From Rebecca billardiae RCC1528 (Eukaryota > Protista > Haptophyta): a stretch of DNA of 64,000 nucleotides. This document shows, in pieces, positions 44,122-46,456 of this stretch (within the stretch, counting starts at the first letter, position 1; each line of letters starts with the position of its first letter). The notes beneath the pieces are model-generated. The model was not told where the DNA came from and did no database searches. It was given only the letters and a program-made list of their open reading frames with translations. The stretch is taken from NCBI GenBank assembly GCA_965240325.2, contig OZ251233.1, forward strand, positions 124,001 to 188,000, read 5' to 3'. The position numbers were made by a program, and so were the translations under genes.

Positions 44122-46456
44122 ATGGGCGCGGGCCGGCGCATGATCGTCGGCGGCAACTGGAAGTGCAACCTCACGCACGCCCAGGCCCTCGAGCTCGCCG
44201 ACCAGCTCAACACCATCCACGTCGGCGACGTGGAGGTGGTGGTCACGCCGACGCTGCTGCACCTCGTGCCCGTGCAGGCGAAGCTCAAGCGCGCGGTCGG
44301 CGTGGGCGCGCAGAACTGCGGGTTCACCGGGATGGGCGCGTACACGGGCGACGTCTCCGCCGAGCACCTCGCCAACCTCGACGTGCCGTGGGTCATCCTC
44401 GGCCACTCCGAGCGGCGCACGCACTTTGGCGAGGACGACGCGCTGCTCGCGCAGAAGCTCGAGCACGCGCTCGGCGCGGGGCTGCGCGTGATCTTCTGCG
44501 TCGGCGAGCAGAAGGCGGAGCGCGAGGCGGGGAAGACGCTCGACGTGTGCAAGGCGCAGCTCGAGAAGGTCGCGCCCCTCCTCGACCCCGCACGCGTCGT
44601 GATCGCATACGAGCCCGTGTGGGCGATCGGTGCGCGCGCGCGCACACCCGCCACCGCACGCGCGCCGGGCACGGCGTGCCCTGCCGGGTCGGGCCGCGCG
44701 CGCGCGAGGCTGCTGCGGTGGGGCTGGCGCACGCGCCGCGTGCAGCAGCAGCGCGCGCGCGCAGGCTGACTCGGCGCGCGCGCGCCCGCGCGCCCTCGGG
44801 CGCAGGCACGGGCCTCGTGGCGACGCCCGCGCAGGCGCAGCAGACGCACCGCGAGATCCGGGCGTACCTGGCGCAGGCGGCGTCGGCGGAGGTGGCGGAG
44901 AAGATTCGCATCCAGTACGGCGGCTCGGTCAACGCCGCCAACTGCGCCGAGCTCGCCGGCTTGCCCGACGGTGCGAGCGCGGCGCGGCGCGGCGAGGCGA
45001 GGCGCCGCGCGCATGCGCCGCGCCGCGCGCATGACGTTCGCGCCGCGCCGCGCCGCGCCGCGCGCAGTGGACGGCTTCCTCGTGGGCGGCGCGTCGCTCA
45101 AGCACGCCGACTTCGCCACGATCGTGCGCGCGTGCCAGGGGCGCGTCGAGACGTTTGGGCCGTTCATGGTCGAGCCGGTGGCGTACGCCGTGCTGGGGTG
45201 CTGCCTGTTTGGGCCCGCGCTGCTGCCGGTGCACCCGTACGCGCACATGCTCGTGCTGGCGAGCGTGATCGTGTACATCGGGTGCCACCGCGCGCTGGCG
45301 CAGGCGGCGGCGACGCCGGGCGAGGCGCAGACCGAGACGGTGACCAAGAAGGAGGCGATGCAGTTCCCGCTGTACGGCTCGGCCGTGCTGCTGGGCCTGT
45401 ACCTGGTTGTGAAGTGCGTGAAGAAGGAGTACCTCAACGCGCTGCTCGCGCTCTACTTCTTCGGGCTGGGCGCGGGCGCGGTGCACCAGGCGGTGCGCAC
45501 GCCGCTGCAGGCGCTGCCCGCCGTGCAGCGCCTCAAGACGCACGTGTGGCACCTGCGCTGGCAGCTGTGGGACAAGAGCGGTGCGCGCGCCGCCCGCGCT
45601 GCGATGGCGCGCCGCGCGCCCCCTCGGCCCGCGCGCGCTCACGCGGCGCGCGCGCGGCCCTCGCGCGCCGTGTGCCGGGCGCAGCCCCGCCGGAGAAGAT
45701 CGAGTTCAACGCGCTCGACGTGCCGCTCCTCGCGCTCGGCGTCGCCGTCTCCCTCGCGTACGCGCTCACCAAGCGCTGGGTGCTCGCCAACGTGCTGGCC
45801 GCCGCGTTCTCCCTGTGCGCCCTCGAGATGCTCACCCTCGGCTCCTTCCAGATCGGCGCAGGGCTGCTGGTGCGGCGCAGGAGCACAGGCGCGCAGGCGC
45901 GCGTGTGCCCCGCCGCCCGCGCTCAGCCGCCGCCCCGCGCCGCCCCGCGCCCGCCGCACGCGCCGCTCCTCGCCGCGCCTGCCCCCAGGTGGCGCTGTTC
46001 GCGTACGACGTGTTCTGGGTCTTTGGCACCGAGGTGATGGTGACGGTGGCCAAGGGCATCGACGCGCCCATCAAGCTGCTCTTCCCAAAGGACCTCGGCG
46101 CGGCCAAGCTCGAGTTCTCGCTGCTCGGGCTGGGCGACATCGTGATCCCCGGCATCTTCGTCGCGATGATGCTGCGCTTCGACCGGAAGCAGAGGCTGAG
46201 CAGCCTGCCCTACTTCCGCGCCAACCTGTGCGCGTACGTGCTCGCGCTGCTGGCGACCATCAGCGTGATGCACTTCTTCGAGGCGGCACAGCCCGCGCTG
46301 CTCTACCTCGTGCCCGGCTGCCTCGGCGCCGCCGGGCTGGTGGGGCTGCAGCGCGGCGAGCTCGGCGCCCTCTGGGCCTTCTCAGAGGACGACGCGCCCG
46401 CGCAGCCGGCCGCCAAGCTCAAGGCCGAGGCCGAGGCCGCCAAGAAGAAGGACTGA
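44122..46456 (+). CDS. TPI: Triosephosphate isomerase-signal peptide peptidase fusion (612 aa); exons 44122-44629, 44806-44970, 45068-45580, 45685-45869, 45989-46456
   Basis: TPI motifs [37 protein letters not shown] and [11 protein letters not shown]. Within exon 3 the frame continues with no stop into SPP: [44 protein letters not shown], ending KKKD. Exon lengths sum to 1839 nt (613 codons). Confidence 0.88.

Follow-up and report, generated by a model that had tools for sequence, protein, structure and literature searches.

A triosephosphate isomerase fused in frame to a signal peptide peptidase in Rebecca billardiae and related haptophytes

We examined a 64,000-nucleotide stretch of the Rebecca billardiae RCC1528 genome (GenBank assembly GCA_965240325.2, contig OZ251233.1, positions 124,001 to 188,000 of the forward strand; hereafter ‘the window’, whose own numbering is used throughout). 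It contains a five-exon gene (44122-46456, + strand) that encodes a single 612-amino acid frame in which a complete triosephosphate isomerase (TPI) is followed by a complete signal peptide peptidase (SPP), a presenilin-type protease of the endoplasmic reticulum (ER). A first-pass annotation made from the sequence alone had proposed such an in-frame fusion with four introns, and the gene model, the Pfam domains and the sequences of relatives all bear it out. The result is a domain architecture that has not been described before; it combines two well-known families and is restricted to one algal order, the Pavlovales. We consider it probable that the gene arose as a Pavlovales-specific fusion between a duplicate cytosolic-type TPI and an ER SPP, and that it specifies a bifunctional, ER-resident product in which the TPI may act at least partly as a dimerising or scaffold module. 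To our knowledge, fusion of a soluble glycolytic enzyme to an intramembrane protease of the presenilin type has no precedent in the literature.

The gene model was obtained by enumerating GT/AG pairs on the + strand from the start ATG (44122) to the stop codon (46454-46456). Three stop-free, in-frame splice models emerged, only one of which gives 612 residues; this is the model adopted here (Table 1). None of its four intron lengths is divisible by three, and every intron begins with GTGCG and ends with CAG (shared pattern GTGCG...(G/C)CAG). Introns are 86-89% GC against about 70% for exons, so composition flags them independently of the reading frame. The C-terminus of the TPI, the linker and the first hydrophobic segments of the SPP are contiguous within exon 3. 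Because the two halves join inside this one exon, the junction does not depend on any splice call – a point made in the first-pass annotation and evident when exon 3 is read directly.

Both halves of the protein are recognizable at the level of domains and active sites. Pfam TIM (PF00121) matches exons 1 and 2 with bit scores of 180 and 51.6 (gathering cut-off 20.1) over profile positions 1-221 of 245, the remainder falling in exon 3, and a phmmer comparison with TPIs in the PDB gives an E value of 5e-85. Peptidase_A22B (PF04258) matches exons 3-5 (E values in Table 1), the match in exon 3 spanning its residues 86-162. The same Pfam search of the gene returned no Gp_dh or PGK domain. As first proposed, both catalytic sets are present. 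The TPI has K14 (in GGNWK, 44161-44163), H95 (in GHSERR, 44404-44406) and E164 (44611-44613), together with the loop-6 lid (PVWAIGTG) and the phosphate grippers YGGS and GGASLK (VGGASLK); through the related protein P0001, described below, these motifs align with those of the solved TPI 8v2x. The loop-3 dimer-interface sequence GAYTGDVS and Cys15, beside the catalytic lysine, are conserved in an alignment of the fusions. The SPP has the YD (AYDVFW, D464, 46007-46009), GLGD (D507, 46136-46138) and PAL (QPALLYLVP, 46292-46300) motifs, which are invariant across all full-length fusions and align to human SPPL2a (9k92). The protein ends in KKKD, which fits the KKxx pattern already noted in the first-pass annotation. 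A KKxx tail recurs in all four full-length copies (KKSE in P0001, KKEN in P0002 and KKDK in P0003), as well as in a further relative (L001, KKGE), and is consistent with a predicted residence in the ER.

We found the identical TPI-SPP architecture in five other sequences, two of them transcript-derived and three genomic. Their carriers are apparently Pavlovales haptophytes, and every source that bears a label belongs to this order. Four proteins with both Pfam domains (P0001-P0004) were recovered when the junction exon was used as a database query, and a later search added P0283. P0001 is a complete 603-amino acid open reading frame (ORF) from an MMETSP transcriptome and is 85% identical to the window protein. 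P0002 (588 amino acids) is an NCBI entry from Pavlovales sp. CCMP2436 that was automatically named ‘Triosephosphate isomerase’; the architecture is thus already present, unremarked, in public protein sets. P0003 (601 amino acids) starts with MGAGRRM, like the window protein, and is encoded on a 2154-nucleotide JGI contig (L004) by an uninterrupted ORF of ~609 codons. P0004 (412 amino acids) and P0283 come from Logan contigs. In the genomic versions – a 313-kb CCMP2436 scaffold (L003), a 14-kb Logan contig (L007) and L001 – the TPI and the junction lie in one uninterrupted block. All four genomic versions, the window included, have introns in the SPP part, and the uninterrupted L004 is therefore most simply a spliced transcript. 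The window protein aligns with P0001-P0004 with no gap at any exon junction, the linker keeps the motif ACxGRxxxFGP(F/Q)M throughout and the junction is common to all six sequences. Mis-assembly or a private loss of the stop codon is excluded.

Further evidence for a joint transcript comes from a 775-nucleotide contig (record 3 of run X1) of a relative that is ~88-90% identical. The run is only guessed to be RNA and possibly has the same source as P0001, so the two are treated here as a single line of evidence. Colinearity of the contig with the window extends from the end of exon 1 through exon 4, and introns 1-3 are absent from it. At the junction, 109 window letters left unaligned face 109 contig letters, indicating that there is no indel. 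Around intron 3 the contig skips 45576-45687 and carries eight letters instead; these match the exon remnants (five letters from one side and three from the other), in agreement with the intron 3 splice. These observations show that one spliced mRNA encodes both the TPI and the SPP parts.

The architecture is rare as well as conserved. An exhaustive phmmer search of 1.84 billion representative proteins with P0001 as the query gave 25,452 matches, among which there was one fusion cluster (represented by P0004). Since any other TPI-SPP fusion would outscore all single-domain matches, no other lineage among these representatives carries one. In the ESM Atlas, no cluster of at least 50 members combines TIM with A22B. 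The search for this domain combination suggested in the first-pass annotation has thus led to the Pavlovales only, and full-text literature searches, including one combining Pavlova, TPI and fusion protein, gave no description of a TPI-SPP fusion. The genome paper of Diacronema lutheri mentions neither fusions nor TPI (PMC8379373).

Fusions of TPI to other partners offer points of comparison. TPI-GAPDH of diatoms and oomycetes and PGK-TPI of Thermotoga and Bacillota are likewise in-frame fusions conserved within a lineage, and both architectures were also seen here (P0147, PGK-TIM; ESM Atlas clusters). Their partners are neighbouring glycolytic enzymes and their products are soluble, whereas the partner described here is an intramembrane protease without a known metabolic link. 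TIM+MauE+DoxX proteins (the ‘BT_3928 family’ of Bacteroidota) and a TIM+TspO protein (P0150) also place a C-terminal integral membrane domain after a TPI barrel, but with other membrane partners and in unrelated lineages, as independent events. Both membrane-anchored fusions appear in automatic annotation only, and we know of no functional study of either. The TIM+MauE+DoxX membrane proteins number 281 members in the ESM Atlas. TPI fusions seen elsewhere in our searches comprise TPI-GST (485 amino acids), TPI-TspO/MBR (558 amino acids), a tandem TPI (640 amino acids) and PGK-TPI (among P0078, P0150, P0009 and P0147).

We compared each half of the fusion with its standalone relatives. The TPI domain shares the full barrel, the catalytic and phosphate motifs and the loop-3 interface with eukaryotic cytosolic TPIs, differing from them in having no stop after the C-terminal helix and continuing instead through the conserved linker into a polytopic membrane protein. 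It is 55% identical to Arabidopsis cytosolic TPI (template-modelling score 0.92). Its closest relatives are standalone TPIs of pavlovophytes (243-255 amino acids, 65-76% identity), whereas no TPI of another group exceeds 61%. Among these relatives is a 248-amino acid protein of CCMP2436 itself (P0282). In a phylogenetic tree, the TPIs of the fusions group with the standalone pavlovophyte TPIs in a single clade (Shimodaira-Hasegawa-like approximate likelihood-ratio test support 93) without a settled order inside it. Two standalone TPIs (P0273 and P0285) fall among the fusion domains with weak support, a pattern that fits more than one order of duplication and fusion, a later fission included. 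By these sequence comparisons, the TPI half is a lineage-specific duplicate of the group's cytosolic TPI, which persists alongside it. The standalone TPI appears far more abundant than the fusion, with contig depths in run X1 of 670-804 against 12.6, though the depth of a contig reflects expression poorly. Among themselves, the SPP halves of the fusions share 65-72% identity, against at most 56% with the best standalone SPPs. No standalone SPP labelled Pavlovales occurred in the top 120 matches – weak negative evidence that the fusion is probably the order's only HM13-type SPP.

We next consider selection on the two halves. Ratios of nonsynonymous to synonymous divergence (dN/dS) were calculated by the Nei-Gojobori method (NG86) and are rough, as the extreme GC content of third codon positions (GC3) probably deflates dS. 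Among intact copies the TPI gives dN/dS of 0.25-0.41, and the linker gives 0.15-0.37 in most pairs. Both active sites of the window copy are intact and under purifying selection. Pairs that include L001 stand apart, with 0.56-0.82 for the TPI and 0.33-0.49 for the SPP; against its nearest relative, CCMP2436, the values are 0.82 and 0.33. The protein encoded by L001 (P0004; L001:204-2220, Logan SRR29340341) recurs with an identical sequence in a second run (SRR29340331). In its TPI the catalytic lysine is replaced by arginine and the catalytic histidine by alanine, five residues of the loop-6 lid are deleted, and YGGA and VGAASL are read at the remaining motifs. Its SPP is intact (YD, GLGD, PAL and KKGE), and the TPI-like domain is still open and full-length, with the loop-3 interface sequence and the linker retained. 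The L001 gene is without window introns 1 and 2, and its five-residue deletion lies at the exact site of window intron 1. Loss of the catalytic residues with retention of the SPP indicates that at least one lineage can do without TPI catalysis in the fusion, and the apparently dead enzyme argues against catalysis as the essential reason for the fusion.

These data bear on whether the fusion matters at all. It could be a neutral ‘Rosetta-stone’ accident in which two neighbouring genes merged once a stop codon and the intergenic spacer had gone, each half keeping its former job without a functional link and the TPI slowly becoming dispensable. The redundant standalone TPI, the decayed TPI of one lineage with its raised dN/dS and the readiness with which TPI is fused to unrelated partners in protists and bacteria (GST, TspO, PGK, GAPDH and MauE/DoxX) are all in keeping with such an accident. 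Yet the fusion has been kept across 15-38% protein divergence, with synonymous differences of ~0.4-0.9 per site in most regions; four lineages constrain the TPI to the dN/dS range of the intact copies; the linker motif is conserved; and even the degenerate copy preserves a complete TPI-like domain. On balance we regard a neutral origin and maintenance as doubtful, though it deserves serious consideration.

We turned to a predicted structure for insight into how a soluble barrel and a membrane protease could share one chain. The AlphaFold model of P0001 (predicted local distance difference test score (pLDDT) 91.3, predicted template-modelling score (pTM) 0.75) consists of a TPI barrel (residues 1-241), a low-confidence linker (246-252), a 19-residue helix (252-270), a four-residue turn (VHPY), a helix at 275-300 and eight further membrane helices. 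The barrel superposes on Arabidopsis and ancestral TPIs with template-modelling scores of 0.92-0.93 and a root-mean-square deviation of 1.4 Å, as expected of the (beta/alpha)8 fold. In VIA-align comparisons, residues 272-586 align with human SPPL2a (9k93; Z 31.3, 271 residues aligned) and residues 271-573 with the archaeal PSH (4hyc; Z 16.8), while PS2 gives Z 13.3. As these alignments start at 271-272, the helix at 252-270, here called TM0, lies outside the nine-helix core. The human-type layout of nine transmembrane (TM) helices in total is thus not the one found here; a tenth hydrophobic helix precedes the core.

TM0 is not peculiar to the fusion. A TM0-VHPY-TM1 hairpin occurs in standalone SPPs of haptophytes (including Prymnesium), a stramenopile and others, preceded by only 5-20 residues; amoebozoan SPPs lack it (alignment of P0160-P0167, P0005, P0154 and P0266 versus P0212 and P0259). 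Plants also have a ten-helix SPP type. Standalone SPPs thus occur in two N-terminal forms, with and without TM0, which implies opposite sidedness of the N-terminus. Human SPP is without an extra helix of the TM0 type and has a lumenal N-terminus and a cytosolic C-terminus, as does SPPL2a. The fusion shares YD, GLGD and PAL, the nine-helix presenilin-type core and the C-terminal KKxx of ER-resident SPP with SPP/HM13 (MEROPS A22B), and differs from human SPP in its TM0, in the 250-residue soluble enzyme before it and in a predicted cytosolic N-terminus. With a lumenal N-terminus of the human type, a signal-less, fast-folding TPI would lie on the wrong side of the membrane, and TM0 resolves this conflict. 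We infer that the SPP type with TM0 has ten helices and a cytosolic N-terminus, and that the TPI and the KKxx tail of the fusion would both be cytosolic.

A fused mRNA need not mean a fused protein. One reading frame could yield two products, a free TPI and a free SPP, by internal initiation of translation or an internal transcription start at Met258 (45166-45168, where the first-pass annotation had placed it) or by cleavage in the linker or TM0. All six fusions have Met258 (in FGPFM or FGPQM), and start codons of standalone SPPs align within a few residues of it, so that it looks like the ancestral SPP start. The linker is also the only low-confidence stretch of the AlphaFold model, and TM0 is predicted to run N-in/C-out, the orientation cut by SPP-type proteases. 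Leaky scanning is nonetheless unlikely past the three in-frame AUGs upstream of Met258; the linker is conserved rather than drifting; ordinary standalone SPPs also have TM0 and evidently do not cut it off as a substrate; and, with a standalone TPI already present, release of a second one has no obvious value. We therefore judge separate products to be unlikely.

The TPI might instead be lumenal, its N-terminus translocated as in human SPP so that the barrel resides in the lumen of the ER or chloroplast-ER. The known topology of human SPP and SPPL2a, and the match of the core to SPPL2a from TM1 onwards, would favour this arrangement. It is very improbable, however, given that a signal peptide is absent and the first TPI beta-strand begins at residue 7, that a fast-folding 250-residue dimeric barrel is on general grounds a poor candidate for N-tail translocation, and that a 19-residue hydrophobic helix and a four-residue turn are added before TM1. 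That the fusion is an artefact of mis-assembly, of a sequencing error deleting the TPI stop codon or of a wrong splice model is scarcely credible: the extreme GC content (76%) does make long spurious ORFs common, and the window has many overlapping ones, but six independent sequences from different data sets share the junction with both domains in frame, the introns are flagged independently by GC content and the GTGCG...CAG consensus, and transcript-derived proteins are colinear with the model.

Our preferred reading, a fusion with a bifunctional ER-resident product, can be set out as follows. A duplicate of the group's cytosolic-type TPI would have lost its stop codon, its reading frame continuing through ~10 conserved linker residues into an ER SPP. 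The product would be a ten-helix membrane protein in which TM0 crosses from cytosol to lumen and leads into a nine-helix presenilin-type core in its usual orientation, with the TPI barrel and the KKxx retrieval signal both on the cytosolic side. An active SPP would in this way hold an active, dimer-forming TPI against the ER (or chloroplast-ER) membrane on its cytosolic side. TPIs are obligate dimers, and we suggest that, rather than being the cell's main TPI, the fused enzyme serves in part at least to dimerise the SPP or to provide it with a cytosolic scaffold. This role is plausible, and three observations lead us to favour it: the presence of a standalone TPI that seems far more abundant, the conservation of the linker, and the relative in which the catalytic residues of the TPI are gone although the domain persists beside an intact SPP.

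A more elaborate form of this reading would have the TPI head, by binding triose phosphates or by pairing SPP cores, gate proteolysis at the ER or chloroplast-ER, tying the turnover of signal peptides, tail-anchored proteins and substrates of ER-associated degradation (ERAD) to carbon status, the dead copy then being a pseudoenzyme sensor or scaffold. We rate this as a long shot. Channelling or tethering of triose phosphates at the chloroplast-ER, coupling of the protease to carbon status and release as a polyprotein, ideas put forward at first pass, are speculation.

Several observations weigh against the preferred fusion reading or limit its reach. The first-pass annotation had looked to transcripts spanning the junction: the contig from the relative may supply one without an indel, but a search of RNA runs with the whole gene listed none, and one with the junction exon gave three runs (word share 0.06-0.07) that contain relatives or unrelated TPIs and not the Rebecca strain itself. 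The guessed RNA status of run X1, and its possible identity with the source of P0001, mean that two of the transcript lines are perhaps not independent, and a contig is not proof of a single molecule. The scaffold idea draws on one degenerate relative and on general knowledge of the TPI dimer, and the invariant methionine at the end of the linker could mark a second start site. The GC3 bias in dS makes the dN/dS values rough. The crossing of TM0 and the side on which the TPI lies are deduced from the lengths of the helices, the four-residue turn and the way the SPP core is known to be oriented, and basic residues in the TM2-TM3 turn (KCVKKE) clash with a simple positive-inside reading.

Table 1. 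Features of the fusion gene and its neighbour, in window coordinates.
Feature	Position	Strand	Content and evidence
Exon 1	44122..44629	+	Start codon, TPI residues 1-169; Pfam TIM E 6.5e-53; splice model; motifs aligned to solved TPIs
Intron 1	44630..44805	+	176 nt, GTGCGC...GCGCAG, 86% GC; 176-nt GT..AG gap in the relative's spliced contig
Exon 2	44806..44970	+	TPI residues 170-224, loop 6 to YGGS; Pfam TIM E 1.2e-13; X1 record 3 covers 44805-44970
Intron 2	44971..45067	+	97 nt, 88% GC; X1 record 3 passes from 44970 into exon 3
Exon 3 (junction exon)	45068..45580	+	TPI C-terminal strand and helix, linker, TM0, turn PVHP, SPP TM1-TM3; Pfam A22B E 1e-6
TPI C-terminal strand/helix (GGASLK...IVRAC)	ends 45135	+	Inside exon 3, read directly
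Linker, 11 residues	45136-45168	+	Inside exon 3; last residue Met at 45166-45168
Extra helix TM0	about 45166-45222	+	Inside exon 3; AlphaFold helix 252-270 of P0001 = window residues 258-276
Helix TM1	window residues 281-306	+	Inside exon 3; AlphaFold helix 275-300 of P0001
Intron 3	45581..45684	+	104 nt, 89% GC; absent from X1 record 3
Exon 4	45685..45869	+	SPP TM4-TM5; Pfam A22B E 2e-7
Intron 4	45870..45988	+	119 nt, 87% GC; gapless across junction versus P0001 and P0003
Exon 5	45989..46456	+	SPP TM6-TM9, YD, GLGD, PAL, cytosolic tail, KKKD (46442-46453), stop; Pfam A22B E 3e-48
MFS_1 transporter (neighbour, not part of the gene)	40914..42582	-	Divergent from the fusion gene; tblastx/tblastn synteny

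The surroundings of the gene are in part shared with a relative. The MFS_1 transporter gene, with distant PDB matches to NorA and MFSD10, lies upstream and heads away from the fusion gene across a spacer of about 1.5 kb in the window and 200 bp in L007, where its ortholog (L007:808-2415, - strand) matches Pfam MFS_1 with an E value of 4.6e-36. This head-to-head neighbourhood is conserved between the window and L007. When the flanks were compared with the CCMP2436 scaffold L003, only the fusion gene itself matched, and the MFS_1 arrangement was not shared. Just 3' of the gene, at 46780-47000, GC content drops to 46-48% for about 200 bp, against the window mean of 76%; this is possibly a 3'-end or intergenic signal region. 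The overall composition of the window is comparable to that of the D. lutheri genome (73.25% GC; PMC8379373). N-myristoylation of the conserved MGAGRR start was considered and ruled out on account of the arginine at position 6, which does not suit the consensus.

Several consequences follow for the annotation and biology of these algae. The TPI-SPP fusion is a clean shared derived character for Pavlovales, and the gene should not be annotated as plain ‘triosephosphate isomerase’. The GC-rich introns, with their GTGCG...CAG pattern, may aid gene finding in the Rebecca genome. For the SPP family, the fusion is a natural experiment on topology that predicts a cytosolic N-terminus for the ten-helix SPP of haptophytes, stramenopiles and plants, and it bears on SPP oligomerisation, as an obligate dimer is attached through a conserved 10-residue linker. 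With intact and dead versions in sister lineages, it also bears on how a metabolic enzyme may drift towards a structural domain. If the TPI head does regulate the protease, the fusion would represent a new way to couple ER proteolysis to metabolism.

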